In this document: piece after piece, positions 17,595-64,000 of the stretch
Position numbering within the stretch: position 1 is the first letter of the stretch
How the letters are laid out: every line of letters starts with the position of its first letter
Source: Octopus sinensis
Taxonomy: Eukaryota
Direction: 5' to 3'
Length of the DNA: 64,000 bases
Assembly: GCF_006345805.1 (NCBI RefSeq)
Contig: NC_042998.1
Coordinates: 104,718,001-104,782,000, forward strand
The notes under the pieces: model-generated
What the model was told of the DNA's origin: nothing
Seen by the model: the letters and a program-made list of their open reading frames with translations, nothing else
Databases searched by the model: none
Position numbers and translations under genes: made by a program

Positions 17595-18295
17595 TTTATT
17601 AAGCATTGATGATATTTTCAAAACTATAAAAATATAAAAATTACAAGTTAGGTGTGTTGTTTCCTACAGAAATAAATTGCTTAGGTGTGATGTCATCTTT
17701 CGCTTATACATTTATTGACTGAACTTTGCACGCTAACACTTTGGTTATTTGAAACTCCATAAAGCGGGCCCAATTGTTTCATGCACAGCTCTTTAAGAAG
17801 TTATCATCATGCTACAAAGATTATTGCAGTTGTCATTGTATTTGAAAAAAAAACATTTAATGAAACTACTAAATTAATTGTTAACAATAACTGTTATGAT
17901 AACTCCGTACTGATATGAATTAGAAGCTGCTCGAGGTATTTAAACAAAATCGAACACACATGCACAAGGTGTGTATGTGCTGTTAGCTCGTGCGTTGGCT
18001 GCATTTTAGGCTTAAGGGAATATTATTCCCAATGCGCCAGGTGTTTTTACTTTCAGGTGTTTTTATCACCGGGCGTTTTCAGAATGTATTCCCTAGCAGC
18101 CGAACTACGAACTAACAACACACCCTGTGTATATGTGTTCGATTTTGTCCATGTCCTGAATACTCATATATATCTTCAATCCTGGTTTTTATTTACGTTC
18201 ACGCGCTCTGTGTATATCTTACAACTGATGTTAACTTGATTATTTGAACTCATATATATCTCTAGGTTCAAATATGGTACATCAACGTTTTCATA
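17595..18295 (-). other. Gene B 3' UTR with AATAAA at 17600-17595
   Basis: Homologous to the gene C 3' UTR (45633-46081), with the polyA signal conserved in position. Confidence 0.65.
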
Positions 18296-18303
18296 TCAGC
18301 AAC
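18296..18303 (-). CDS. Gene B terminal coding exon, (R)C*
   Basis: Polypyrimidine acceptor tttcttttctttaactcattag|gt tgc tga; paralogous to 46082-46092. Confidence 0.8.
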
Positions 18304-18949
18304 CTAATGAGTTAAAGAAAAGAAAAGAAATAAAGCATACTATTGACAGTGAAATAGATACTTCGGTTCAAACAATCAAATGAAAGGTATGAAATGAAAT
18401 AAATCACATATTAATGTAAAATATCTTTTTTTAAATATTTTAATAAAATGAAATAAAACAAAAACTTATCCATAGTTCTATCAAGAACAGAAATACGTGA
18501 GTAACAATCTTAACAAAATCAAGCATAACATTAACACGTGATTAATAATTAGTGACTTATGCTCGGATGAGATAGCAATGAAAACTTACCATTACCTATA
18601 TATCATCATTATGTTAATATTTCATCTTGGCAAGGCGTCGCGCAGGAAGAATCGTTAGCATGCCGAGTAAAATGCTTAGAGATATTTTGTCCAGTTTTAA
18701 GATTTGAGTTCAAATTCTGCCAGTCAACTTTGCCGCCCCTCCTTTCCGGCTCACTAAAACAAGTATCAGATGAGTACTGGAGTCGATGTAATCGACTTAC
18801 TCGCATCTCCGAAAATTTCTGGCTTTGAATCAAAATTCGAAACCAACATTTCCTCTAGGTTTAGGATCCTCATGCAAGCAGATCCAAATACTCGAATTAT
18901 GGAAAATGTAAGTATTAGTGAAGTACTTCATTCATCTTGATACTGAACA

Positions 18950-19346
18950 TTCTTTTCTAGTCTAGGTATAAGGCTCGAAAGTTTTGGGGAGGGAGCTAGT
19001 CGACTAATACGACTCCAGTACGTAACTGGTACTTAATTTATCGACCATGAAAGGATGAAAGACTAAGTCGACCTCGGGGGAATTTGAACTCAGAACGTAA
19101 AGACAGACGAAATACTTATTTCTTTACTACCCACAAGGGGCTAAACACAGAGAGGACAAACAAGGACAGACAAACGGATTAAGTCGATTACATCGACTCC
19201 AGTGCGTAAGTGGTACTTAATTTATCGAGCCCGAAATGATAAAATGCAAAGTCGATCTCGGCGGAATTTGAACTCAGAACGGAACGGCAGACGAAATACG
19301 GCTACGCATTTCGCTCGGCGTGCTAACGTTTCTGCCAGCTCGCCGC
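18950..19346 (-). mobile_element. SINE family 2 copy in the last intron of gene B
   Basis: Reverse complement of 4124-4575. Confidence 0.85.
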
Positions 19347-19849
19347 TTTCATAATACTGAATATTGATAAGAGACAGAAATTGATAAGCAGTTGTTAATT
19401 ATTCAAAATATAGGTATGGATGATTCTACATTATATTGAAAAGGATTTGTTAATTAAAAAATATTGGATTCGTTTTACGTCAGTATATTTCAGATTAAAC
19501 AGACAACAGCATATAAAGTTATCATGTCTGCAATTATCACAGAAGAAACGTTTCTTTTTAATGCCTTATGACCATAAAATATTTTAGTGGTGAAGAGCAT
19601 TATCTTAATGCATTTTCATTGAATATTAAACGACGGGTATATAGATACTTGCAAAATGAAATTAAGAAGGGAAAGAGGTTAATGTAAGTGATTTCCAGTC
19701 TTTAATATCATATCCAAAATCAGGACACTTTAAATCGAAGAAAGGCTTATCTAACATCCTTGCTGTTAGACACAAATTACAAATGTAATGCACTAAAGTA
19801 ATCCATTTCGTCATATATGTGGTTTGATCAATAAGTATCCGGACTGTTG

Positions 19850-20690
19850 CTATAGTAACAAAGCTAAAACACAGAGAGTAAAGCTGCATAGCACAAATTG
19901 ACTTTGAACTCTGCTGTACATGTACACTAAGTTTTAACGTTTTAGCTCACTTCTGCTATTTACAGAAGTGCTTAGAAGGAAGGTGTGTACTGCATGATCG
20001 TCGAATTGACCATGGCAGAGAAAGTTGAGCAGAGAATCTGCATCAAATTTTGCCAAAATTTTGTCGATACCTGCTCAGTGGCTTCCACAAAGTTTTCAAA
20101 ACGTTTTCATCGTTTTAGACACAACCAAGGAGAGCTTATGCAACTGAAACCCGAATGTCCTTTTGGTCAACTGAAAGCAGTTTTGGCACAGACTTGGCTG
20201 TCACGCGTCTAATACCCAAATCTTCAGTGATAATGGACTGGACTGAACCGTTACTAATCTGCACATCCTCTGATAACTCACGGATGTTGATTCGACGATT
20301 TCCCTCACAGCTACACACAGATCTGCGATGTTTTTCTCAGTTGTGCTGTTTGTGGGTCTCCCAAGACGTTCGTTAATAACGACATTTTCACTGCCATCTT
20401 GGAAATGACTGAACCGCTCGTACACTTGTGTGCGACTTATACACTCCACTTCATAACTTTCTGCAACTTTGCGTAGGCCTCTGAGCATGTATTGACACGA
20501 CAACTTTCTCTATCATGTTCAATGTGACGATCAAACGCTACACACCTTCCTTCCAAGCACTGCTTCAAACAGTGGAAGTGAGCTAGAATGTTAAAACTTA
20601 GTGTGCGTGCACAACAAAGTTCAAATTCAATCGGTGCCAAACGGTGTTACTGAGCGTCCTTTAGCTTCGTTACAATGTCAACAGTCCAGC
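19850..20690. mobile_element. Rearranged mariner remnants (+ at ~19985-20070, - at ~20130-20660)
   Basis: EQRICIKFC and SRTQVYE...ERLGRP...RRINIRELSE...LGIRRVTAKSVPKLL HTH motifs. Confidence 0.8.
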
Positions 20691-21070
20691 TACTTATTGA
20701 TCAAACCTTGCATGCCTAAAACGAAAATTTCTGATGCACTGATAAATAAATTCTCAGATAAATTAAACAGTCAATTTGTTTATACGAATTAAAGATATAA
20801 ACAAATAAACAACATAATTTATTTTTCAGCGTGTGCCGGGAATGCTTAAGAAACCATTAAACAGTTTTCTCAACTTTAACGTAAAAGAAATTCAGTTGCT
20901 TGCATTTTACAAATAATGACGTTATAATGATTATATTTTCTTTATTATTTCTTGTCTATATATCTATGATAGCACAATTTCTATTGAGCTGTAAAGGGAT
21001 TAATTGATTTTATTTAAATATATTTCGCTTGTATAATTAAATTAGAAAGAAGTAAAAGATTTTGACGTAC

Positions 21071-21184
21071 GTATTATTTTCTCCCAGTAATATTCTTTAT
21101 AGCTACTTTGGCATTTAAAAGAGATGCAGGAGCTTTCTTGATGTTGCCATCCTGGAGGATAACATTTGTTGTTCAAAATACAAC
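21071..21184 (-). CDS. Gene B module exon 6, (G)CILNNKCYPPGWQHQESSCISFKCQSSYKEYYWEKII(R)
   Basis: cctag|gt acceptor, c|gtacgt donor, 114 nt, phase 1-1, 4-Cys pattern. Confidence 0.85.
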
Positions 21185-21619
21185 CTAGGCAAAATAAATT
21201 TGTTACATTACAAAAGTGCTTTGCAATATTGTACAATTAATTTTATATACCTCGTATATGTAAACAATGCCATTGCTAATTAGATGTGTTTATGAATATT
21301 AAATATTCATAAATAAGTGTTAATTATTCAAAACATACGTATGGATGATTCTACATTAAATTTTTTAAATCCGTAAAATTAGTTCCAAAATCTTTAAAAT
21401 TAAAAATGAGTTTTCCACAAAAGTGAAAGATATAATTATGTTTTCATAATGCATTCGAATAAGAAATGTAATGGAATTAAAATGTTTCGAATACGTTGAC
21501 CACATTTACTTATATGAGTATGCAAATTATTTCATGTAACTAATGTATATATATAAGTTTAATAAATATTGCTTAAATTTCTATTGGCATATGGACTGAG
21601 CATATAAATTTAAGCTTAC

Positions 21620-21739
21620 CGGCTGCTTCAGTATAATGTCCAAATCCTTTCCCCATTCTGTCACAAATACTCACAACACATCCATCTTCAGATTTTATTC
21701 TCGTTCCAGCGTCCTGACAACTACCGTTTATTCTGCAAC
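21620..21739 (-). CDS. Gene B module exon 5, (G)CRINGSCQDAGTRIKSEDGCVVSICDRMGKGFGHYTEAA
   Basis: ttcacttcaag|gt acceptor, g|gtaagc donor, 120 nt, phase 1-1. Not in the ORF track. Confidence 0.88.
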
Positions 21740-23167
21740 CTTGAAGTGAAAAAAAATATTATTTCGTTGCATGAGTACTTGTGTCTATGAAATGTATATT
21801 CAATTATTTCGACTTAATCGTATTAATTGTGTATTGTCAGTGTATTAAAACCATGAAATATTAACTAAACTTTCAAATATGACTCGTAGCATAAAACTTA
21901 CATGTCGCATCGAAAGAAAGTTTATTTTAATACAAAATTAATACATTGTCTTACTGCTGTTTATATTGTTGCATGATTAATTTGAGCATTTTATTCAAAA
22001 GTTGGATTTTCTTATATATTTTAAATGAAAGTATCTCATCAGGGCGCTTTATATGTTAGTACTATATCATATAAGTACTCTATTTGGCAATGTGCACTAT
22101 CACTTGAAATATAATGTAGGATATGTATTTTTAAAAACACATTTTAATCTTGTTGTGAAGAGGAAGCAAAGTCCTCACACTACATATTTTATCGCACCAC
22201 AGATTGAAAAATGGAATTGTTTTGATTAGTTTGTACTCTTCTATACATCAAGAATTATCATCTTTTAGTACTTTATAGACTACAGCAACTACGTCTATGT
22301 TTAGCTATATGTTTCCACCGAACCAACCATGGTTAATTACATTTACGATGCTGAGAATGATTAGAGAATGCTTATGTAACATGGTGAAGAAAAAATATGC
22401 GAGAATTACTTTAAAAAGTACCGCTGTTATCCGGTATTCTTACTTTTGTTTACACCATCACCGATTTCTGACTGAGACAACTACACGCACACATACAAAC
22501 ACACTAGCACACAGGCGTGTGTATCCATATCCACGCCTGTCTTTGACGTTCAAGTATTTCTCTTAATCAGTTAAATTCCGTAATAGGTCTAAGAAGTATA
22601 TCAGGTGAATGACGACCGAATTGTTGAAGAATGCAAAGACTGCTTCATTTAGGATTGACGACAATCTGTATTACTCAGTTCCTCATTAATTATCGGGTAT
22701 TTCAACATGGTTACAAAAATCCACCTTTTATCTGGAATATGGGAAATTTTGTCTCTAACTTCACTTATATAGTACTTCATATTAGATGCAAGAGCATAGA
22801 AGTTTTCGATGAATTATCCAGTATATTATATTCCCATACTTAAAGTAAGTTATCTATATTGACTATACACCTTTGAAAATTATTAGTATTGTGCAGTACA
22901 ATTTCAATAAAATTAATAATGCGGTTTTACTTGCATCAATAGGCTGTATTTGCACTAATTTTAGAAACACTGTTCTGTTACGAATTAACAATTGCATTCT
23001 AAACGTTTTATAATTATTGAGTGAAATATATATCACGAAATAACATTCCGCTTTCAATATGAAATTGATCTCTGTTGGCGTATAAACTGTAATATTTTGC
23101 TGTTCATAAAATACATACTTGAGTATCTTATATAAGGGACATTTTGTAAAAAGATTCACAAACTTAC

Positions 23168-23287
23168 CAGTGCGATTAGTGTAAACTTGATATCCATTCT
23201 GGTCCATTTTACAAATTCTTTCAGCACAAAGATTTTCTGAATATACTTTCTCTCCAACCTTCCGACAAGCACTGTCTATTAAACAAC
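23168..23287 (-). CDS. Gene B module exon 4, (G)CLIDSACRKVGEKVYSENLCAERICKMDQNGYQVYTNRT
   Basis: tttttacattaag|gt acceptor, g|gtaagt donor, 120 nt, phase 1-1. Confidence 0.88.
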
Positions 23288-24885
23288 CTTAATGTAAAAA
23301 ACAGTTTTCTTTTATTTCAAGAAATGTGAATTGCCTCTTGTCAGTATATTTATACCTAAGCAATATTAACGACTCTTCCAAAAACGAGTATTCCTTAAAG
23401 ATTTTGTCACACTTCAAACATAATGAGTTAGTCAATAAACTAATTCTACTAATTGTAATACTAAATATGCAAGGCATTTTGTTTATGTTTAATGAAGGCA
23501 GAAGCAAAAGGATTTATTTATAGATAATTAGAGATTGTTACATGATTAATTAAATATACTATAATATTCAAAATCAATTTTCTAATATATATCTTTGCTG
23601 AAAGCGTCATATTAGAATTCTCTATGCGTTTGAAATGCGTCATAGTGTAATATAATTTGAAATATATTAGATGATATACATTTTTAGACACCTATTTTAG
23701 TTTCCAAAGGAAAAGAAAATCAAGAAATTGCAGTATCCAATTTTATTTCACATTTTATCTCTCCCTAGTCGGAAGATATGGTATCAATATGATTAATTTT
23801 AATGATTACTTAATGGTTACTCAATGAGTATTTTATAATTACTTAAAACTTACATAAAAATGAAAACACATCTTGTGTTCGTAGGAATATTTATAAAATG
23901 TGCAGAAACAGGACCTAAACCGAGCTACTCAGTCAAATTTCAAACGTTGGCAACGTGGAAGGATTCATTTATTCCTAAGACAGTACATAGTGTTGGCGGG
24001 TAGATTGAATTATAATGTATGGTACACTTTTTTTGTTAAACATACAATGATATATCTGTCCAGAAAATCAAACAAATTAGTTACACGATAGTTTTTAATA
24101 TCTCAATGGGAAGAAAAACCAGATCGATCAGATTAATTTCTACTACAGTCTCTTAAATCGAAACCCCTTACTCTCTAATCGAAACTCAAGATGTAAGAAC
24201 AACTCTGCATGTGAATATCGATCTTGAACACCGCAAATTATCATAAAATTAATTACAAAATTACACTCGAGATTAATTCAGAGAAATGATATAGATAGAA
24301 GATTCATACTAAGCATCTTATAGTAATTACTATCGTCACTTTACTCTTAAGCTTCAAATCGAGCCGGAATTTTTGTGATTACCCTGACAAACAAATCTAC
24401 AATATATTTATCAATGATCCAAGTTATGATACTGTCGCTTATAAATTGCCTCTTGAAAAAAATAAAATCGATGATCATCACATTTGTATTGTCTAAAATA
24501 TTTGATTCTTTCACATTTTCATTTGCCTAAAAATATTCTTCTAAAATAGTGTTTTTCCATAGTATGACAATGTTGTTGCTAATTAAAGATATATTGAGGT
24601 TTGAAGAATGATTAGTAGTGATCATGATACTCTTTCTATTTTCATTTATTCAACGATCCTCTTAACCGATTTATAAATGGAGACGACAATACATACAATA
24701 TTACAACATTCAATTTGTGTATTTTAACGCCAATACATGCGTGTTTTTTACCGCGACAAAATTATTCAAGGAAAGCATTTCTGAAATTAATAGATATTGT
24801 TAAAATATTTACATTTGTTATTTTAATTTAAATATTGAATGCAGTTGAACATTTTCAACAACAAGTATCAATATCTGTAACTTAC

Positions 24886-25008
24886 CATCAAGCTTTCCTC
24901 GCCATCCAATATACGATGGATACATATGTATGCAATGTATAGAATAACAAGGGTTTCTTGTTTGTATTTTCGTGCCAATACTGTGACATACACGATTCAG
25001 TAAACAAC
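24886..25008 (-). CDS. Gene B module exon 3, (G)CLLNRVCHSIGTKIQTRNPCYSIHCIHMYPSYIGWRGKLD
   Basis: ttttgtttgtag|gt acceptor, g|gtaagt donor, 123 nt, phase 1-1. Confidence 0.88.
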
Positions 25009-25196
25009 CTACAAACAAAAAATAATTACGATAAATGTGGGAGAAACTACTCAGTTATGTCAAGATATTGTCCCCATAACAACAATACGATATTTACTCA
25101 GGTATGCACAGAGCTAAAATTTCAGTGACGTTTACTTCTTAAAGCGTCTTATGTTTTTGCATACCTGAAAATTTGTTTCATATCTCTGAAATTTGC

Positions 25197-25230
25197 ATAC
25201 ATACATACATACATACATACATACATACAT

Positions 25231-25284
<54 letters not shown>

Positions 25285-25295
25285 CGACAGACAGA
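25197..25295. repeat. Compound (ATAC)n(AGAC)n microsatellite
   Basis: Direct inspection. Confidence 0.95.
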
Positions 25296-27240
25296 CGTAC
25301 GTACGTGCGTGCGTGGGTACGTACGTAATTGCGATCATACATGCATGCATGCATACATACATACATGTGTGTGTGTGAGTGTGTATTACTGGTCTATGAC
25401 ATTGCTAACTGGATGGCTTCTCATAAATTATCCCGGGTATCGAAGGTATAATGATATGTTAAATAAAGTATACCAATAAATATATCCCAAGTCTATTTTT
25501 CTGGCGTATTACATATATTACAGCAATAATAATTTTATTTCATGTCGAACTATATAGAAAAATACAATTAATTTGATAATTCCAGTACATTTTAATCATT
25601 TGAAATAAATTTTGTTTCAATATATGGTCAAATTCATTGAAAAAACGTGAAAATTTGATATAAACCACTCTAATGGTTATACATCTAATCATATTGTAAT
25701 GCAATTTACCATATTTAATTGCAGTCGTTTCCCCATGAAAATGTCTTTAAAAAATCAATCTGTGTCCTGCATGCGAATTTGTGCTCATATTACATGCCTT
25801 AATTCACTAAAAGTATTTTTCCTGAATATGCACTGCTGAAATTGGGGTGCGACTAATATGCCTGAGCGTTTTTTACGCCATCAAATCTCTAAGAAAACGA
25901 AAATCCTTGATAATTATCAAAATATTCCTGTTTCAAGATATAGAGAAGTTTTGCGATGTTTGCAAAGCACATCAAATCTGTGTACAAAGAAAGCAATTAA
26001 ACTACATTATACTTATTACTATTACATTTGCACAATATTCGAGTAGCTTTCTCAAAAAAAGTTTGCTACCTTATTGGTACCTCTTTAACTTTTGTTATGT
26101 TACCTTATGGTATTTCAACAGAAGACTGGTGACTAATTATTTGCATCGAAGTTCTTCATCAATGTTCAACAACGAAAGAATATTATAAACATTTATATAC
26201 ATAATACTATTGATAGTGAAGTATTTCAGCATTAAACAATATTGTACATAAAATATCCTATGTATTAACAGTGAATTACAATTGAATTATGGCGGAAATT
26301 ACCTGGCTTGTAATAGCATTGAATTGTTATCGCCCATGCAAGCTTGGGTATATTGTATCCTTATGTTCTTATTTATGTATCTACACATTTTTTATAATGA
26401 AAACGCTTTATCATTCTTCATCAGAATATATTTCTAAATAAATAACTGTTAAATTTAATTATACCTTTAAATCAGAAAATTCTGTTTGGAATCTAACATC
26501 TGATTAAATTCAATTAAAATAAAAGGAATTTTTATTACTATATAAGTAAGAGAAATCTTTAGAGCATTGGAAAAATTCTTTATGGTAATCAGTTATTATT
26601 AGTTACGGATATTACTTTCTTATTTTTAAAAATATCAAAGCCAATTTAACATTTCGCTTCGTAAGAATCGATAAAATACATTATAGTCAAGCACTAAGTT
26701 CGTTTTAATCAACTCTGCACGTCTTTATCTAGCTTATTGCATCATCTTTCATTTGTCGGAATATAAATCACAAGGAAAAGTAGTGCTTAAAAAACATTTA
26801 ATTTAAATACAAGAAACTTGCAACGTAAGAAAATTCCTATGTATTACATGTCTGATAAATGTTGTGAATGTCAAAAGAAAATATTGAATCCCATACGTTA
26901 CGTAAATAAAATAGAAAATAGAGTTTTATTTTAGAGACGTATCACTATAAATGTATACATTTCACTTACTGCATATTGATATTGTTGTTTAACTACTGGC
27001 AAACACTGCTCGAACATAATTATGATTAACGATATTGCATTAGTAATCATTTCATAATTTTACTTATCGAAGAATAAACTGACAAATCGTCCTTCATTTT
27101 TTTATAAACTTATCTGCCATTTTTTGTCCCTAATTAGCTACGTATTCTATTGTTACGACGGTACTGAATAATAGATTTTATTCATATTTAATTATTCAAC
27201 TTTTAAATCTTCAATAGAGTAAAAGTATATTGTAACCTAC

Positions 27241-27363
27241 CAGTATATGTCGCTCTCCACACATATCTACCGTATAGGGTACGCATGCAGGTATGGTACA
27301 TACATCTGCCTCTTTCTGTTATTCTGTGACCTTTTTTATAACAAACACCATCCCGGTAACATC
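27241..27363 (-). CDS. Gene B module exon 2, (G)CYRDGVCYKKGHRITERGRCMYHTCMRTLYGRYVWRATYT
   Basis: caacttctag|ga acceptor, g|gtaggt donor, 123 nt, phase 1-1. Confidence 0.88.
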
Positions 27364-27799
27364 CTAGAAGTTGCGAATATACACAATTTGTTATAATCAA
27401 AACTATAGGTCTGGAAATATAAAATTCTTGCAATTATATTTACATCTAATTAAGATAGAAATACAATGACCTAGCATAACCACTCCAACGCCTTAAAATA
27501 AATCAAAGGGAGATTAAAATTCGCATCCATTAAGCAGCGTGTAGGTTGCATACATCACATGTGCACAAAACTACACACACAACACATATATACAATTATA
27601 TACACGTACGTATAGTACTGGTCCTTTTTGCATGAATATACGTGTAACTGTGTGTGCGTCTGTGAGTACAAACACACACACACACACATATATATGTATG
27701 TATGTGTGTCTGTCTGTATGTATGTATATGTATACATGTGTATGTGCATGTATGTGTTTGTGTGTGTGTGTGTGTGTACATATATAAACATATATTGAG

Positions 27800-28200
27800 C
27801 TACAACAAATATTCTGTTCAATACCAAAGATTTGCTTGCCAGTTGATTGACTTTAATCAGTTGAAAATGTCCGTATTTGACGATATGTAGATCTCTGGAC
27901 ACGGCTAGGAGTAGTGGGGAAATACTGCTGCCGTATGTTGAGAGGAATTCTTTGGGGTTTGAATAATTCACCACTGGAAATATAAGTGTTTCATTGATTA
28001 TCTATAAACGAACTTTATTCGGGGACATTTGGTCTCAATTTTGATGTAATGTTGTCATATTGTCCAGTAGATACAACTGCTTACTTTGTCGTGTCTGTAT
28101 ATAAATTCAGACTTGGCAAGAACTAGACAAGTGGAGATGATGTGGTCAACTTTCTGATTGTGTTGGCTGCACATTTTGCATTCGGAAATACTAATACAAA
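27800..28200 (-). mobile_element. R4/Dong-like LINE C-terminal (CCHC) fragment
   Basis: CKMCSQHNQKVDHIISTCLVLAKSEFIYRHDK motif on the minus strand. Confidence 0.6.
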
Positions 28201-28254
28201 TAGTCACAAAACACGAACAAAACAAAAAACTGTTTTCTGTCTTTAAGGAAGATG

Positions 28255-28264
28255 AATAATAGTA

Positions 28265-28299
<35 letters not shown>

Positions 28300-28366
28300 A
28301 ATGATAATAATAATAATAATAATAATATTAATAATGATGATAATAATAATAATAATTATAATAATA

Positions 28367-28418
<52 letters not shown>

Positions 28419-28419
28419 T
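28255..28419. repeat. (GAT)n/(AAT)n microsatellite
   Basis: Direct inspection. Confidence 0.95.
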
Positions 28420-28680
28420 AGATATGGAACACTCCACCCAAGAACTGACACAGACAGACTGTATGTACCAAGAAAAAGAGGGGGAAGAGGACTGATTGGA
28501 TGCGATCACAGAATTACAGCAGAAGAAAACAACACAGCATGGTATGTAAAAATGCCACAGGACCGCTATTATTAGAAGTAAGAAGGTCAGGCCTGTGTAG
28601 GATGAAAGATTGTTCGGAGACCAGACATTGTTGTGTTCATTTTCTCTATGAATGATCATAATCTTTTCCCAATCATTTTC
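28419..28680 (+). mobile_element. R4/Dong-like LINE fragment
   Basis: TLHPRTDTDRLYVPRKRGGRGL motif. Confidence 0.65.
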
Positions 28681-29205
28681 AGAACCCATCATGTGTTGAA
28701 CCGGTGAACATCATGGCTTTGTTGTTAAGTGTATTTGAAAACAACCAATCAGTAATAGTGACGCAGCGAGCATTCCGTAGACGATCGAAAAAGGATTTTG
28801 CTTTGGATTTCTAATCTTCAGGCAAGTGGACCCACACTGAAAAGAAAGTCACCTGGCAGACCCAGGACCGTTAGAATTCCAGAAAACGTAACAGCATTAA
28901 GAGCCTCCATTCAACAATCACCAAAGTGTTCCGCTCGTAAGTATAACATAGCACTAGAGATATCAAGCTGAAGTTAGTTACAAAAAAATATTTTTTAAAT
29001 CTGTAGGTCAAAAGATAATGTTTCTCAGAACGTTAAGACAGACGAGATGCCGCTAAGAATTTTCCCTAGCATAATAATGATTCTACCAGCTTACTACTTT
29101 ACATCTAAAGGATGACTATTGCTTGTAGTATTCCTTTTCTTGTTGCAAATTCTGGCATGCGTTTTATAATATAATGTTTGGAAGATAAAGACCGTACAAA
29201 CCTAC

Positions 29206-29325
29206 CGGTTACTTTATGCCGCACAAAAGATCCATGACCTCTTCTTTCACAAACATAAGTCATACAAAATGGAATTGCATCTACTTTTGTTCCATATTTC
29301 ACACAAACGCCGCGTATCAAGCAAC
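29206..29325 (-). CDS. Gene B module exon 1, (G)CLIRGVCVKYGTKVDAIPFCMTYVCERRGHGSFVRHKVT
   Basis: ttttcttttaactcatag|gt acceptor, g|gtaggt donor, 120 nt, phase 1-1. Confidence 0.88.
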
Positions 29326-29553
29326 CTATGAGTTAAAAGAAAATTAATACATTTTGTTTATACCAGTAACTCTTTATGAAATACATTATTGCATTTAAAA
29401 CGCTACAAATGATTGAAGCTTTTCATGTGACGCAAACTTACTAAGTTTAAAGCTGATATTGAAACAAGAATCATCACTGAAGGTGACACTAATCTTTAGT
29501 ACATATGGTATTTGTTATTAACTCATTTAATATAAATTAGCAATGAGTATTTG

Positions 29554-29592
<39 letters not shown>

Positions 29593-29755
29593 ATGTGTGC
29601 GTGTGGGAGGGGTTGTAAAGATGAGTGTCACCTTCAGTCACAAATTTTGTTTCAATATCAGCTTTAAACGTAGTAAGTTTGCGTCAGATGAAAAGCTTCA
29701 ACCATTTCTCAGGCTACATGGATGAATGATAAATTATATTTACAACGCACACACG

Positions 29756-29826
<71 letters not shown>

Positions 29827-30163
29827 ACTACTGTATTTTGTACGTATACAATAGTACATTATCCATTCAAATTATCCATTCATTACACAAATATTCATAT
29901 ATTCAAAACAATACAAACGAAGTCGAAGTATAAAAGTTTCGAACAGCATCTAGTACTTTCTTCAATATACTATCACAAATTGTTAATCTCTAATTTGGGT
30001 AGGTCTCATCATCTGTTCATTTACATTTAATCATGCAATCGTCGATGCTGTCATGGTTTATAGATTATAGATTATATATATAATTTCTTCCAGAGTAAAA
30101 GAGAGCCAAACATGTAGCAATATAAAGAAATACGATGAAGACTAAATATGTTAAAATATTTAC

Positions 30164-30226
30164 CTTCCTCTACGATATAACATTTCGGTCCAAGAGGTAT
30201 TTTCTGCTGACACGGTTTTCTTATCC
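30164..30226 (-). CDS. Gene B linker exon, (G)IRKPCQQKIPLGPKCYIVEE
   Basis: catttttgcag|gg acceptor, gaag|gtaaat donor, 63 nt, phase 1-1, two Cys. No paralogous exon in the window to confirm it. Confidence 0.65.
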
Positions 30227-30705
30227 CTGCAAAAATGTAAATATAACTAGTGTTATAAAAATATAGCACTAGTTCTCGTTATATTCTTTCTGCTATAGGC
30301 ACAAGGCCTGACATTTTCTCTCTTCTTGTTTCTTGAGTAATGCTGCGATGGACTGGCGTCCCGTCCAGGTGGAAGGGAACACATACGCCACAGAAGCCAG
30401 GAAACCGGGCCCATGAAGCTGGCTAGGCTTTAAAAGGGTGACGTTTATCGTTATTTATAACGCTGTTACAGTGTAGAGGTGTTGGCATAATCTTTGACAG
30501 AACAGTGATCCGATATTAAAATAAAATATTAATTTCGAATGAGCTCCTGCAAAATTTCTTTATTATGCGAGAAGTGTAAATGTGGATTTGTGGTGTTTAA
30601 CTACACCCACCATTATTTGAATTACAGGTGAAATCAATTCAAATATTCAAGGGAGATTCAAGAGAAAAATTGTCACGCTAGAGCTGATATTCTCTGATAT
30701 CTATC

Positions 30706-30793
<88 letters not shown>

Positions 30794-30800
30794 AATACAA

Positions 30801-30831
<31 letters not shown>

Positions 30832-31260
30832 AGCAATGAGAGCACACTATTGACAATTCCCAGATTAGTCTGTGCAGTCCAGTGTTCTAGCTTTACTTTG
30901 CTTTGCTCATGTGGCAGTTATCTACCCTGCCGTTTTATATGAATGTTCTTTTTCGCAGATATAAGTGGTTTAACGCTTCTAGCAATATCTGTGCTTTACA
31001 GTACGTTGCATTAGCGCATTGTTCATCTCTGTAGCAGTTTGTAGATGAAACGTATTAATACCTCGTTTATACATGTAATGCATTGGAGGAAATATTTTAC
31101 GCAGGTACCATTCAGCACCTTCACACATACACTTACGCAAGCCTTACGCACATAAACCAATATTTTGTTTGTAAGACACACTTTAAATTTCCCATACTAT
31201 TACAGGGTAACTGGACGATTACATCATCTTAAGGCATACATTCTATTTTGGGTTGAAGGT

Positions 31261-31670
31261 GGCGAGCTGGCAGAAACGTTAGCACGCCGGACGAAATGCT
31301 TAGCGGTATTTCGTCTGCCGCTACGTTCTGAGTTCAAATTCAGCCGAGGTCGACTTTGCCTTTCATCCTTTCAGGGTCGATAAATTAAGTACCAGTTACA
31401 CACTGGGTTCGATGTAATCGACTTAATCCCTTTGTCTATCCTTGTTTGTCCACTCTATGTTTAACCCCCTGTGGGTAGTAAAGAAATGGGTATTTTGTCT
31501 GCTTTTACGTTCTGCGTTCAAATTCCGCCGAGCTCGACTTTGCCTTTCATCCTTTCGGGGTAGATAAATTAAGTACCAGATGGTAAAGTATTAGAAATTA
31601 GTACTGGATCGATCTAAGCGACTGACCCCCTCCCACAAAATTTCGGACGTTGTGCCTGGGGTAGAAAAGA
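31261..31670 (+). mobile_element. SINE family 2 copy
   Basis: Matches 4124-4575. Confidence 0.9.
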
Positions 31671-32177
31671 ATATTCTGACATTTGCAGTGCACATAGTAT
31701 CATGATTGTCAATGATTTAATGATATGGTAAAGCATTAGAAATTTGAAGAGTTCTCAAGCTAATTACGGGTTAAAGAGAATTTAAATGTTCGAAAAGAGA
31801 CTTCTAGAAATATGAATCCTACTTCCCTCAAGAAGAGAAAAAAAGACCCATTTTATTTACTTAGATCAAGTAACACATTTCCTCAGCATTTCCTGGGTTT
31901 CACTGTTTCAAATTTGACGTAAGAAGGCGAGCCGGTAGAAATGTTATTAGCATTTCCCCCCGTCTTTACTTGGTGAGTTCAAATGCTGCTGAGGTCGTCC
32001 TTCCCTTTCATCCTTTCAGGGTTGATAAAATAAGTACTATCTAATCACTGGGGTCTATATAATTGACTTGCTCCTCTCCCGAAATTGCTGGCCTCCGACA
32101 AAATTTGAAAACAATGACACTGTTCATAGATTAATGCTATTATGGAGGAATACATAGCCGGTTAAAATTTTACTCAC

Positions 32178-32238
32178 CTTGCGAAGTTGCTTGTTTGTAC
32201 GTTATGCAAAAACTGATTAAAAGCAGAAAGTATCTCAT
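32178..32238 (-). CDS. Gene B signal-peptide exon, MRYFLLLISFCITYKQATSQ(G)
   Basis: ttgtttcag|gaaaaatATG (exon starts 32245), caag|gtgagt donor, 61 coding nt. Paralog of 3081-3141. Confidence 0.85.
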
Positions 32239-33105
32239 ATTTTTCCTGAAACAATTATAATAAAAGTATAAACGAGTTAAAATAAATATATGTATATTAA
32301 TGACTTAATCAAAAGAAGAACAATGGATTTCAATATTTCTTTCCTGGTATGAGAAATGAAGAAAGAAGTGAAATGATTAATTTGTCGTTCAAAAACTGTA
32401 GACCTGATCCGATTCTCTACAGCATAGTAGGAGTAGAAACCGTACCAACAGCAATATTAAATAAATACTTGATTCATATAGCGAAATAAAATGCCAACAT
32501 TTAACTCAAATAAAAATTAAAAATGAAAAGTGTGAAATTTGGACTAAAGGTTCACAGTGTTACATTGGGTAACGCATTAAGCTTACCCAGTCACCACTAG
32601 TGGAAAAGGATTGGCCTTTCACCGAAAATTTACACGAATTCCTTCAACCAAATTACACATATAAGTCTTGCTACCAACCATAACTATAGTTGAACATGCA
32701 CTCTCAGTCTTCTTTACTGTGGGATTCAGCGTGTTACTAAAAAATCCTTAACCGTACGATTACATTCACGCTAAATATTCAGTTATTAGAAGAAAGTGAT
32801 AGCACAATGAAATAACAGGGCATAATGTAATTAAAGGAATAAAATTCACAGTGATACATGTTTTTAGAAATTCGGCAAATGCGCCTATAATCTATTTGAC
32901 ATTATCAATTAAGTTTAAATAGATACAACAGCAATATTACACAAATACATGTTTCATGTAACTAAATAAAATAGCGAAATTTAATTCAAATAAAAAATAA
33001 ACTGAAAAATAGGGTACATCATTTCAAAGAATTTTAAAGTTACTCCCTCTCCCTTTCAATGTAACCCTATAAAAATACATATATGTATATAATCTGCCTC
33101 TCTAT

Positions 33106-33171
<66 letters not shown>

Positions 33172-33325
33172 GTCTATCTATCGATCTGTCTGTCTGTCTG
33201 TTTGTCTGCCCGTCTCTTTGTCTGTCTCTCTGTCTATCTTATATTTTTATGGTATGTTATATATCTAATGCAAATAAAATGTTAGTTTATCAATTGTATT
33301 TCTCTATTTCATTTAATATTTGCAC

Positions 33326-33682: not shown

Positions 33683-33982
33683 AACACAGATATATGTATA
33701 TACATATACACGCACATTAACACATACATCATACATACGGGCATTCACATACTCATGCATGCGTACGTTCATATATATATATATATATATACATACATAC
33801 ATACATACATACATACATACATACATACATACATACATACATACATACACAAACACACACATACATATAATAATCGAAACGGCGTCAGTTCTGTAATAAA
33901 TGTATTTAAAAGATTTGGATAGATGCAGGTTTCTACAGTATGAGAATGTTAGACGTAGAAAGCAATGAAAATGAAAACTCAC

Positions 33983-34050
33983 AGATGTAATTTAAGTCGT
34001 AAATACGCGCGCACACACACACACACACACATACACTTCTAGAGGCGATT
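33983..34050 (-). other. Gene B non-coding exon 1 (predicted)
   Basis: Donor acatct|gtgagt; aligns with gene A exon 1; contains a (GT)n tract. Confidence 0.6.
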
Positions 34051-57904: not shown

Positions 57905-59032
57905 CAGTGGTTGAATAGTTTGTATTCTTGTCAAGCTTCAGGCATATAGTTTCCATCCGGATATTGTACGATGGGTTGGTGCCTTCCTCTCAGATCGCTC
58001 CTTCCAAGTCCAAGTTAATGGTTCGTGGTCCGACGTCTCCAGTGCGAGCAGTGGCGTGCCTCAAGGTTCAGTGCTTGGGCCCTTGTTGTTCTTAGTCTTC
58101 ATAAATGACTTGCCCGATGACCTCACGCAACACACCCTTCTATTTGCCGACGATATCAAACTGGTCGCTCCTCGCGGTAATATAGAGGATCTTCGTCGAT
58201 GCCTCCACCAAATTTGGAAGTGGTCTAACGATTGGGACCTGTGTCTGAACGTGTCAAAGTGCTGTCATCTGCCTGTCGGCTCTACTCCTGCAACTCAACT
58301 TGATTTCGAGCCGGGTCGTCTGCTGCTGGAGAGGACCGATCAAGTAAAGGACCTAGGTATCTTGGTGGATTCCTCCTTTTCGCCTTCGGCCCAGTGCGTC
58401 CATGCTGCCAACAAAGCACGCGGAATTCTGTTCTTGATTCGACGGTCATTCGGAATGCTCACAGCAGCCATATTCCTACCACTCTATGTCACGCTGGTGA
58501 GACCCATATTGGAGTATGGGATTCAAGCCTCTTCTCCTTATCTCCTCAAAGACATACAGCATCTCGAAAGAGTCCAGAAGCTGGCTACCCGCATGGTTCA
58601 TGGTCTCAAAAATTTGTCCTACGAAGAAAGGCTGAGGACGCTCGACCTTTATTATCTTGAAAAACGCCGCCGCCGTAGTGATCTCATTCTCGCCCACAAC
58701 ATCATAAGCGGAAAGTGTAACCTCTCGAAAGAGCTGTTCTTCACTCCTGCTCCAGAGCGTCGGCTGCGGGTCATTCCGAAAAGCTCTACCTGCGACGATT
58801 TCATCTCAATCGAAGGAGAGGAGCTTTCTCCGTCTGGGTTGCGGATCCGTGGAACAAGCTGCCAGACGAGATGGTAAAGATGCCGACGACCGCTTTGTTC
58901 AAAGCCTCCCTGGACCTCAAGTGGCCTAAACTCTTTACATGAACACCACCCTGTACTTAACTCCATGTCCCCCTACATGGCCTTGCTATTTGCTTTTGAG
59001 CCAAATTAACTAACTAACTATCTAACTATCTA
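57905..59032 (+). mobile_element. 5'-truncated CR1/L2-type LINE: RT domain, one frameshift near 58769, (TAAC)n tail
   Basis: PQGSVLGPLLFLVFINDLP...LFADDIKL in ORF 58056-58877. Restoring one G gives GHSEKL...RRGAFSVWVADPWNKLP ending at TGA 58940-58942. Confidence 0.9.
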
Positions 59033-60598: not shown

Positions 60599-61708
60599 CT
60601 ATGAATTAAAAAGACATAAGTTTTTTTTTCTATTATCAACAATGTTCATGAAATACGTTTGTTCTTGTAACACACTTATAAACGATAAATTATCAATTTA
60701 TCTTCAATGGTGAAATATCCATTTCCATTTCCAACACGGATATCCGTTGAAGGGTGAATACGTTTTCAGTGATAATGAGTTTCAATGTTAGTTTCGAAAC
60801 GTCTAAAGACTAGGATGCACGAAAAATATCATCTTCATTTAACTGTACAAATATAGATAAATATTATTTCAAAATTAACATAATGTTATTTTTTTAAATT
60901 TTAAAGCAACCTAGAATAACAACTGACCAATAAGTGAAGGTATAACTGTATATATGACGACAGGCGACTCACAGTTGACTTCATATACAAATATAAACTA
61001 TATGTGTATATAAGTGTGTAATTATGTGTTTACAAAATAAGAGATCCAATATAATACAAATGCATGTAATACTATGTAGTACAACCTTAACCGTGTCTCA
61101 GTGCTGAACTGGACAGTTCCTACAAAAACAACCAACACAAACAGACAAATAAACCTTTACGTATTAGGTTCGCGTTAAAAATGAATTAAATCATTCAGAG
61201 AAGAACTCTTTATGTTTCAAATTACCAGACATTGTTCTTCATACAACACAAGAGATTAAAATGATAAGAATGGAACGAATCAGTGTGGTGATTTCCCACC
61301 TTCGAATGGCTTCATCTTTGAATTAAGGACCCCTGAATAGGATTTAATTCGCGCTTAAAAGTGACTAACTCAACAACCGCTCCCAAATGAGGTGCATTTC
61401 TTTAAAGAGATAGATAAACGGCTCATCCAGCTCACACACTTCTTTGTACGGCGGCTGATGTTAATAGAAGAAATAGGGACTGGGGGAAGAAGTCGGAACT
61501 TTATATTACACATGGAAGAAGAATAGGAAGAGATCAGAAAGGAAAAAGTTTTTTAATGAAAGAGAGTATATAGATTGAGGAAATAGGTAACTGCTAATCT
61601 GCGCATGTGTCGCAAGTATCTCTCTATATCATTTGGAACTCGTGTGTGTGTTTGTATGTGTAATACACATGTGCACACAGGATTATAAACACACACACAC
61701 ACACACAA

Positions 61709-61763
<55 letters not shown>

Positions 61764-62329
61764 AACTTACTGTTAACAAAAGTCGGGATGCGTCGCGTTC
61801 AGTTACTCAATAAGTGAAAATGCATTAAATATTTAAAAAAACGTACACATAGGAGAGAGAGAAGAAGCCTAATTCTTCATCAGTTGTCGATAACTGATGA
61901 AGAATTAAGGTCCTTCTGTGTCTGTCCTGTGTGTACGTCTTTTAGTATTTAATGCATTTTTCATTTAAAATATATATATATATAATGCATCAAGTACAGT
62001 ACATCACCAACTAGTGAAAAATACGTAAATACATAATGAGAGACAAGTACAGAAGAAAATACCAAAATAAATCTAACCCCTCCTCAGTTGTCGACTGTTA
62101 ATTACTCCCGGTTTCGAACTTTCAACGACACGATAGGAAAGCTTCACAAAACAGCAGTATCCAAAAATTTTTTAAACATAAAATTTTTAGTGAGTTAGAG
62201 CTTCGAACGAACAAACAACGACAGAGTGGACGTACAGATTAAACAGTCGACGAATACGAACATTAATGGCCGTTAAGCGAAGACGCATCGTAATGGGTAA
62301 TGCCTGGGAGAAATTTTGAAAGGATACAG

Positions 62330-62600
62330 AATACATAGAAGAAAAGAAAATAGTAGAAGAATCGTTATCGTAACCGTGATGCCAACTTTAAGACAATCAA
62401 TAAGAAACATTCAATATCTATGGCAGATTTTGTATGGCACCTGAAGGAGGATAAAACAAAGTACAGCATTAATTGGTCCATAGTAAGGTATGCGAAACCA
62501 TACAATATAATTTCCACGAGATGCTATCTATTCTGTGGACTAACGAGAAGATAATAGAATTTCTGAACGACATCTCAAGCGTACGCATATAAATGTACTC
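62330..62600 (+). mobile_element. Penelope-like GIY-YIG remnant
   Basis: NFKTINKKHSISMADFVWHLKEDKTKYSINWSIVRYAKPY motif. Confidence 0.6.
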
Positions 62601-63689
62601 TCCCACAATGCAGTGAGTATGAATTTTGAGCAACCGCTAACTTAATTTGCTTTAAGGTATGGATGACTTAAGTTTACATTTAACTTCTCCATCCTTATAA
62701 ACATCAAGTAGATAACTAACTCGCTTTGTGATCATGAGTGCACCAAACCTCACGTGTGCGTATGGTTGCATTTTTGCGGATGCTTGTATGAGCGAGTGTA
62801 CTCGCGCCATGCAGATTGCCCGAGGGCGTTTATACATCCATATCTGTTAACGGCTATTCGTAATACTTTTCTCGCTGGATTGCGTGTTCGTTTCTCTTTT
62901 TGCCATCTGTGATTTTATTTTTGATCTTCTATATAAATGAAGATATTTCCTCCCCCTGGCTTCTTTTCTTTCTACAAAACGGAAAGTTACATTGCGGAAC
63001 AGTCATTTTAAAGAGTTGTATTTATTTATCACCCGACGAGATACATCTGCACCATCGGATGCTCTTGAACTAGTTGTTGAGTGTCCCACCCAAGAGGAAT
63101 CGACGCTAGATGTGTCGAAACAATTGTCGTGATTAATAATAATATCTCGTATATTCCACCTTCTGCTTTTCAGACTAGTTGAGGGTGTGAGTGATGATGG
63201 TCCTAGCATTGAATCTAAGCATCGACGAGAACAGTCTGAGTAGCCTCTTTCAGAGGACCTACAGGTTGAAGATCATGGACAATTTCCAAAAGCCTTTGGC
63301 TTGGCAGTACTACAGAGGGGCATTTCCTGTTCGAGACAAGCACTTCAGGCATGGAAGTGCCAAAAGCCGAACTTGCTCGAGATACTTGCAGGGGAACGTA
63401 ACCGTCTAGGATGCATTAGAGAGTTGTAGGATTGTGTGGAGCAGCTGTGTCGGGAATAAGACGAATTCAGCTGTCTGAGAGTGCATAGCGAATATCGATG
63501 CACCACCTTCCTTTTGGAGAAAAGGAAGGCAGATTTTTCTCTGCTTAGTGATTGTGGTAAAAGAGGCTATGTGGTGGGCTAGTTTGAAAGGTTTGAAGAC
63601 AGGTACATTCCTATCTGGTGAAACCCTCATCAATTTCTTCATCATTTGCTTTCTTTCTCAGTTAACATTATGTCTGGTTTCCAATTCTT

Positions 63690-64000
63690 TATTTCATGGT
63701 CGCACTGAATCATAAAATCCCATAGGGTCTTTGCATTTCGATGATGCCTTCGGGTTTATATTCGTACCACTTTTTTGCTCCGTCAAGTTCATACTCGTTG
63801 CAAAGTATCCAATGGACAATCATTGCTATATTGTCATGACGTCTCATATTCTTTCTGGGATAGTGGCGTACATTGAGTGGTAATATGCCATAAGGTTTCA
63901 CCATTTAGTCCACAAATTCTGTACTTACCACTTTCTGATGTGTTGTCTATTTCCGTTTCCGGTTTTTAATCACTTTTACCCATCCATAGCCATATTTTCT
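63690..64000 (-). mobile_element. R4/Dong-like LINE C-terminal fragment
   Basis: RRHDNIAMIVHWILCNEYEL..AKKWYEYKPEGIIE motif. Confidence 0.65.

Follow-up and report, generated by a model that had tools for sequence, protein, structure and literature searches.

In a 64,000-nucleotide stretch of the Octopus sinensis genome (contig NC_042998.1, positions 104,718,001 to 104,782,000 of the forward strand; AT-rich, 34% G+C), hereafter the window, we confirmed a gene of nine coding exons on the minus strand, gene B, one of a tandem series that includes genes A and C. We hold with moderate confidence that gene B is a real gene for a secreted, disulfide-stapled binding protein of six modules resembling fibronectin type I (FN1) modules, with a diversifying surface. 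The gene model itself is not new. Gene B is RefSeq LOC115232515 and is already annotated as an uncharacterised protein: a protein search with the model, the check proposed in the preliminary description of this DNA, returned XP_036354653.1 ('uncharacterized protein LOC115232515 isoform X3 [Octopus sinensis]'; X3 below), which agrees residue for residue with the model in every shared exon, the 8-nt last exon (...EKIIRC) included. Literature searches by accession and locus name found no paper mentioning gene B-related accessions or locus names.

Exon structure and transcript of gene B

The coding exons of gene B (61+63+120+123+123+120+120+114+8 = 852 nt; coordinates in Table 1) translate into an open reading frame (ORF) of 283 amino acids with one stop, which is terminal. 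The eight introns without exception have GT-AG ends and interrupt the frame in phase 1. The preliminary description had claimed nine exons summing to 852 nt in an open frame, with no stop or frameshift in any of them, and both claims were borne out. Searched with a hidden Markov model (HMM) of the module, the window translated in all six frames gave matches for the gene B module exons at E 1e-17 to 1e-19 and for four further exons, belonging to the neighbouring paralogue, at E 1e-15 to 1e-19. The next-best match after these ten module exons had an E of only 0.13, so the module pattern lies far beyond chance and no gene B module exon was overlooked.

The same-position gene of Octopus bimaculoides (LOC106869870, XP_014771277.1; locus L002) has the same nine coding exons, which supports the proposed order of signal peptide, linker, six modules and a terminal Arg-Cys before the stop. 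The O. bimaculoides locus is collinear with window positions 35000-17500 through exons and introns, and the introns can be aligned from one end of the locus to the other, which makes the gene an orthologue by chromosomal position; on the same ground we rejected the possibility that XP_014771277.1 (P0004) is a paralogue. Its coding sequence was rebuilt exactly from nine exons (61, 60, 120, 123, 126, 123, 117, 111 and 8 nt; all GT-AG), with a MRYFLLL start directly after the same acceptor, the module-2 exon present and an 8-nt last exon, AATGCTAA, that encodes (Q)C and the stop. The two genes thus share coding exons, start, six modules and terminal cysteine, but the proteins are only 39-41% identical (end-to-end collinear, E 2e-60), with module-by-module identities mostly highest on the diagonal. 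Both X3 and the LOC106869870 product are labelled 'uncharacterized protein'. A Logan genomic contig (L001) from a third, closer octopod (~78% nucleotide identity) carries exons 4-6 with frames, splice sites and 12/12 cysteines intact. A word-index homologue search gave no candidates with a module alignment, and the P0004 query returned only P0004. In O. vulgaris, the model CAI9717959.1 contains modules 4-5 at 100% identity inside an evident mis-prediction.

The preservation of the ORF, splice sites and scaffold cysteines in O. bimaculoides and in the third octopod supports the earlier suggestion that the gene is functional. We give next to no credence to the opposite reading, under which the exons would be a pseudogene, a chance ORF or parts of two transcripts: a ratio of nonsynonymous to synonymous divergence (dN/dS) of 0.9 against O. 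bimaculoides would suit a decaying gene, but the ORF, 16/16 splice dinucleotides, the signal peptide and the aligned scaffold cysteines are kept across three species, and this conservation persists despite near-saturated nucleotide divergence of the exons. That the exons might belong to two separate transcripts, named beforehand as a possible refutation, is unsupported because RefSeq annotates gene B and its neighbour as two genes. The reading as a functional, secreted six-module gene is therefore supported with two small corrections, which concern a leader exon and the status of module 2.

X3 represents the same gene and is 100% identical to the nine-exon model over the shared exons; it differs by skipping the module-2 exon and by starting at an upstream ATG within a microsatellite, which adds 19 N-terminal residues. 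These extra residues (MCVCVCVRAYLRLKLHLKN) stand ahead of the signal peptide and come from a separate leader exon, in which the X3 start ATG (at 34032, in frame) lies inside a (TG)n microsatellite. The leader donor (GT after 33983) joins an acceptor at 32245, seven bases before the ATG at 32238 (tttcag, then GAAAAATATG). The exon first described as exon 1 is therefore the second exon of a transcript with at least 10 exons: of the claim to a complete exon set, the nine coding exons stood, and the first exon proved incomplete, lacking the bases up to the acceptor and the leader exon upstream. The acceptor of the start exon (tttcag, then GAAAAAT) is conserved in the paralogue gene C and in O. bimaculoides.

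We consider MRYF a better choice of start than the upstream ATG of X3, since a typical signal peptide begins right there, since the O. bimaculoides orthologue model begins at MRYF, and since gene C shares the arrangement of tttcag followed by GAAAAAyATG. The signal peptide and cleavage site of gene B were judged by eye. The RefSeq X3 start codon is probably mis-assigned, an artefact of longest-ORF annotation that falls within the microsatellite of a non-coding leader exon. A look-up of contigs encoding the X3 protein found none on record.

The second correction concerns exon use, for which the nine-exon description agreed with X3 in every shared exon and, among the nine exons described, departed from it only in module 2. 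Each module exon begins and ends in phase 1, so the frame survives the loss of any one of them; such symmetrical exons would allow isoforms with different module numbers, and X3 is one that lacks module 2. It is possible, though we think it the less probable case, that a five-module protein is the main product, with the module-2 exon a rare or decaying cassette and the 283-amino-acid form minor or absent. The one RefSeq isoform retrieved, X3, lacks this exon; the pyrimidine tract at the exon's acceptor (0.59) is weaker than most others, and the phase-1 symmetry makes loss of the exon harmless to the frame. The exon is nevertheless open, with AG/GT boundaries and 4/4 cysteines, the O. bimaculoides orthologue model uses its equivalent, and the label 'X3' implies further isoforms of LOC115232515.

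Module family, fold and cysteine pairing

Each module is encoded by one exon and comprises ~40 amino acids with the consensus G-C-x6-C-x3-G-x(7-9)-C-x4-C-x(~15), in which G1, C2, C8, G12, C21 and C26 are invariant. Of 1.84 billion representatives searched with a profile of the ten octopus modules, 31 proteins matched at E<1e-3; P0010, P0017, P0018, P0025, P0027 and P0028 were left out of the family as low-complexity or VWC/mucin false positives. Profile matches were significant outside octopus (Patella 2.8e-17, Lottia 7.2e-17, Lymnaea 9.6e-12, Mytilus 2.7e-10 and others), and every species-named match among those looked up was a mollusc. The members come from cephalopods (Octopus), gastropods (Patella, Lottia, Lymnaea, Biomphalaria, Plakobranchus, Physella, Babylonia) and bivalves (Mytilus, Pinctada, Ylistrum, Mizuhopecten, Argopecten, Pecten), and almost all carry the label uncharacterised or hypothetical. 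They repeat units of C-x4-8-C-x7-17-C-x4-C behind a signal peptide judged by eye, mostly at ~15-amino-acid spacing (11-25 in some members), with up to 30 copies per protein and an N-terminal VWA domain in some. Judged by sequence, the gene B modules belong to an unnamed tandem four-cysteine module family that has so far turned up in molluscs alone. We rejected 'prestalk protein', the name NCBI gives the Patella homologue, as functional evidence, since it is a mere name for a cysteine-rich repeat protein. Searches of PDB sequences with the gene B protein and with the ten-module profile returned nothing.

For structure prediction, modules 5-6 plus the terminal cysteine were modelled by AlphaFold2 with an alignment of 93 two-module windows from the family. 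This gave a mean predicted local distance difference test score (pLDDT) of 94.2 and, in each module, three short strands followed by a long beta-hairpin; a single-sequence AlphaFold2 run on X3 reached a pLDDT of only 39.5. In a Pfam scan of the same 93 windows, Fn1_2 (PF23003) matched 27 (best E 9e-7), SVWC 15 and VWC 8, none of the Fn1_2 matches being established for gene B's own modules. The curated Fn1_2 cut-off of 27 bits was not reached, with 20.9 bits for the best full-length relative and no match for gene B, and VWC (PF00093) and SVWC (PF15430) gave only sub-threshold matches in relatives, the modules having four cysteines. Searched against PDB sequences, the 93-row profile found only a von Willebrand factor (VWF) C domain (E 0.14), aligned over the C-x4-C ... 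GC-x6-C stretch, and Foldseek against the PDB, with no significant match, ranked the fibronectin type I module pair FNI2-3 first (scores below) and also matched the model to the collagen IIA VWC domain at template modelling scores (TM) of 0.40/0.48. UniRef names the Mytilus cluster mates 'MIG-18-like fibronectin type I domain-containing'. From these likenesses, which lie below significance, we infer that the predicted module fold belongs to the FN1/VWC-subdomain class; by threshold gene B falls in no Pfam family. Within an FN1-like tandem-module family, gene B is a divergent member that Pfam does not detect.

FN1 modules are one-exon, phase-1 units with the motif C..G..Y..GE.W. The FN1 fold has five strands, in which the A-B hairpin packs against a C-D-E sheet, and two disulfides connected 1-3 and 2-4. 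The octopus modules resemble the vertebrate ones in length (~40-45 amino acids), in the predicted all-beta structure, in a predicted two disulfides each and in their tandem arrays. They differ in cysteine arrangement, which is C-x6-C...C-x4-C in the octopus module and a single N-terminal cysteine followed later by C-x-C...C in vertebrate FN1, and in that the octopus modules appear to pair one cysteine per junction across modules. Among Pfam families, Fn1_2 (the MIG-18 type) fits the wider mollusc family best, and its proteins are likewise secreted; however, its 70-position profile exceeds one 40-amino-acid module, and MIG-18 has no long tandem array. In Caenorhabditis elegans, MIG-18 is a secreted cofactor of the ADAMTS protease MIG-17 that localises to basement membranes (PMC4856095). 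By analogy with this protein, the sole functional anchor of Fn1_2, a matrix-binding role of gene B would fit. A literature search on Fn1_2/PF23003 returned only irrelevant papers.

The VWC likeness would allow gene B to be a VWC/chordin-like extracellular regulator that binds growth factors of the BMP/TGF-beta type, which we regard as very improbable. Relatives do give weak SVWC and VWC Pfam matches, and there is weak similarity to the VWF C domain and the collagen IIA VWC domain, but nothing reaches the Pfam threshold and the module has neither the 10-cysteine VWC pattern nor the CxxCxC motif. For VWC and SVWC alike the resemblance is a weak one of profile and structure, in a module lacking their 8-10-cysteine pattern. 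Developmental regulators are, moreover, normally strongly conserved, and gene B is only 41% identical between congeners.

An architectural parallel exists in avian CREMP, Drosophila DPY and Chironomus Sp185, which are built of tandem two-disulfide structural modules, with disulfides predicted between successive modules in Sp185 (PMC12723725). The idea shared with the octopus proteins is a long run of small two-disulfide beta-hairpin modules, and the comparison is one of analogy only. Kinship to the CREMP and DPY modules was rejected, as their cysteine spacing (C-x4-C-x5-C-x8-C in CREMP, C-x5-C-x5-C-x4-C in DPY) differs from that of the octopus module and no sequence signal connects them.

Cysteine counts suggest how the modules may be joined. 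Most full-length relatives have an N-terminal cap with 3 cysteines, n x 4 cysteines and a C-terminal cap with 5 or 1, the five-cysteine cap being an FN1-like unit (C-x6-C ... C-x-C ... C). In the octopus proteins the count is 1 linker, 4n module and 1 terminal cysteine, a total of 22 for gene A isoform X2 and of 26 for the O. bimaculoides orthologue. If two disulfides were closed inside each exon unit, one unpaired cysteine would be left at each chain end; the totals balance only with one cross-junction disulfide per module junction. In the AlphaFold2 model the hairpin register places the third cysteine of a module beside the start of the next, so that the third cysteine of each module is predicted to pair with the first or second of the following one. 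The last exon of gene B, which is preceded by a strong polypyrimidine tract, resembles the first two codons (G-C) of a module exon, and gene A ends in an 11-nt counterpart of it (Table 1). It may accordingly be a truncated module exon, kept since it would supply the partner cysteine that closes the last module, and this putative cross-module logic accounts for an otherwise odd 8-nt terminal coding exon. The linker cysteine in KPC is common to gene A, and a cysteine stands at the aligned position in the O. bimaculoides orthologue. A second linker cysteine, C36 (in PKC; window ~30179-30181, minus strand), is present only in gene B and in neither gene A nor the O. bimaculoides orthologue.

Divergence between octopods and the nature of the protein

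The signal exon of gene B has 85% nucleotide identity to that of O. bimaculoides. Across window 21071-29325 compared with positions 20975-72239 of L002, the six module exons reached only 60.6% (shuffled baseline 56.6%) and the 120-nt flanking introns 69.0% (shuffled baseline 57.5%), so that the module exons have diverged further than their neighbouring introns (z = 3.9). Long intron stretches have 70-78% identity. For the mature region dN was 0.62 and dS 0.69 (dN/dS 0.90), with an intron Jukes-Cantor distance of 0.40. The ORF, all splice sites and the scaffold cysteines at every aligned position have been kept over this divergence. Because signal, scaffold and splice sites are conserved while the other module residues outpace the introns, the module surface has probably experienced diversifying selection, at least in episodes. 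The same pattern, in which signal and scaffold are conserved and the rest is close to saturation, is known in cysteine-framework toxins, antimicrobial peptides and reproductive proteins. Mussel MgCRP-I (PMC4558851) offers a comparison case for it.

Taken together, the gene B protein consists of a cleavable signal peptide and a short linker followed by six ~40-amino-acid modules, each on one phase-1/phase-1 exon, and would most likely be extracellular, forming a rigid, disulfide-stapled binding or adaptor rod. Its fast-changing surface would bind a fast-evolving partner, whether an immune, prey or venom, reproductive or chemical-signalling one.

Several results pull the other way. A Pfam scan of the 283-amino-acid protein gave no relevant match, with none to Fn1_2 at E<=10. 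The best Foldseek match of the model in the PDB, fibronectin FNI2-3, covered 80 columns and both modules but stayed below significance (E 0.21, probability 0.75, TM 0.41). The cross-module disulfide pattern is cysteine bookkeeping and not a measurement, and mature gene B has 27 cysteines, an odd number owing to the extra C36, so that one cysteine must be free or in an intermolecular bond. Compared with the closer octopod L001, exons are more similar (86%) than introns (80%) and dN/dS is 0.45, with no acceleration, and a dN/dS near 1 could also reflect weak constraint on the non-scaffold residues.

Weak constraint is also what would explain the rapid change if gene B were a structural extracellular component of matrix, mucus or egg coat, its repeats serving as rod or cross-linker. 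We think this unlikely. Relatives do reach 13-30 modules, some of them (P0019, P0024) with VWA domains as in matrix proteins, and the odd cysteine count permits intermolecular cross-links; MIG-18, the characterised protein behind the Fn1_2 name, localises to basement membranes (PMC4856095), and structural proteins with tandem two-disulfide modules have been described (PMC12723725). At 240-283 amino acids, however, the octopus proteins are small, and structural matrix proteins do not usually form a tandem paralogue cluster whose exons have diverged further than its introns. A secreted binding protein with a diversifying surface remains the reading we prefer.

Neighbouring paralogues, repeats and implications

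At least three tandem paralogues (A, B and C), gene B among them, lie on the same strand (Table 1). The signal, linker and first two module exons of gene A lie beyond position 64000, and no signal or linker exon of this gene was found in 60600-64000. An extra intact module exon, absent from gene A isoform X2, may be used alternatively, may belong to another isoform or may be a remnant. The start-exon region of gene C has 76% DNA identity to that of gene B, and gene C continues past the window's low end. Module exons, whether of one gene or of different genes, have almost no DNA similarity left, only the extra exon and gene B module 1 aligning (66%); the duplications are therefore old.

Table 1. 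Features of the three paralogues and of their introns, in window coordinates
Feature	Position	Strand	Description
Gene B, 5' leader exon, 3' part (non-coding)	33983-34032	minus	donor GTGAGT after CT; X3 N-terminus MCVCVCVRAYLRLKLHL maps here and splices to 32245
Gene B, start-codon exon	32178-32245	minus	ATG at 32238; signal peptide MRYFLLLISFCITYKQATSQ; coding part 61 nt; likely cleavage between ATS and Q, by eye
Gene B, linker exon	30164-30226	minus	GIRKPCQQKIPLGPKCYIVEE; two cysteines
Gene B, module 1 exon	29206-29325	minus	GCLIRGVCVKYGTKVDAIPFCMTYVCERRGHGSFVRHKVT; E 1e-17; 58% amino-acid identity to O. bimaculoides orthologue module 1
Gene B, module 2 exon	27241-27363	minus	intact; skipped in RefSeq X3, may be a cassette; orthologous exon used in O. 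bimaculoides model
Gene B, module 3 exon	24886-25008	minus	translation and module HMM
Gene B, module 4 exon	23168-23287	minus	module HMM; orthologous exon intact in Logan contig L001
Gene B, module 5 exon	21620-21739	minus	module HMM; orthologous exon in L001; in AlphaFold2 model, pLDDT 94
Gene B, module 6 exon	21071-21184	minus	module HMM; orthologous exon in L001; in AlphaFold2 model
Gene B, last exon, coding part	18296-18303	minus	GT TGC TGA; completes Arg, adds final Cys and stop; X3 ends ...IIRC
First AATAAA polyadenylation-type signal	18188-18193	minus	102 nt past stop codon; consensus match only
Gene A (LOC115222431, P0003), last three modules	54704-54588, 50610-50494, 47589-47476	minus	match isoform X2 exactly
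Gene A, terminal exon (11 nt)	46092-46082	minus	GC TGC TCT TAA, encoding SCS and stop; matches isoform X2 exactly
Extra intact module exon	60598-60479	minus	55% identical to gene A module 1, 40% to gene B module 1
Gene C, start exon	3148-3081	minus	acceptor tttcag, then GAAAAACATG; 61-nt coding part MWYLLLLSSLCIANAQLKPE; GT donor
Retrotransposon-like ORF (273 amino acids)	58056-58877	plus	Pfam RVT_1 E 3.5e-12, C-terminal part only
~170-nt dispersed repeat, gene B introns	31255-31431, 19182-19355, 18950-19116, 18642-18797		both orientations
Microsatellites, gene B introns	28255-28417, 25199-25296, 30698-30793, 29748-29822, 33101-33239, 33773-33867		include (AAT)~55, (ACAG)~24, (TATC)~24, (CA)~37, (TCTA)~25, (ATAC)~24

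The ORF with the RVT_1 match is a retrotransposon fragment, probably from a long interspersed nuclear element (LINE), on the opposite strand within a gene A intron. The ~170-nt repeat of the gene B introns has the look of a short interspersed nuclear element (SINE), and the O. bimaculoides locus has at least 6 copies of it at 72-86% identity. Microsatellites crowd the gene B introns, and many long 'ORFs' of the window are read-throughs of such repeats.

For the cluster as a whole, genes A-C could form a hypervariable secreted system of recognition, defence or venom-like function on the unnamed mollusc domain, an FN1-like module linked to its neighbours by disulfides, with exon skipping adding combinatorial isoforms, an idea we offer as speculative and rather improbable. 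The exons of these genes would then, like those of conotoxins, outpace their introns under diversifying selection. For the mollusc-only family, mostly 'uncharacterized' and missed by Pfam in the octopus proteins, the predicted FN1/VWC-like fold would supply an identity at fold level. With a conserved signal and scaffold and a putatively hypervariable surface, the cluster is a candidate for work on immunity, venom, reproduction and chemical signalling in cephalopods.

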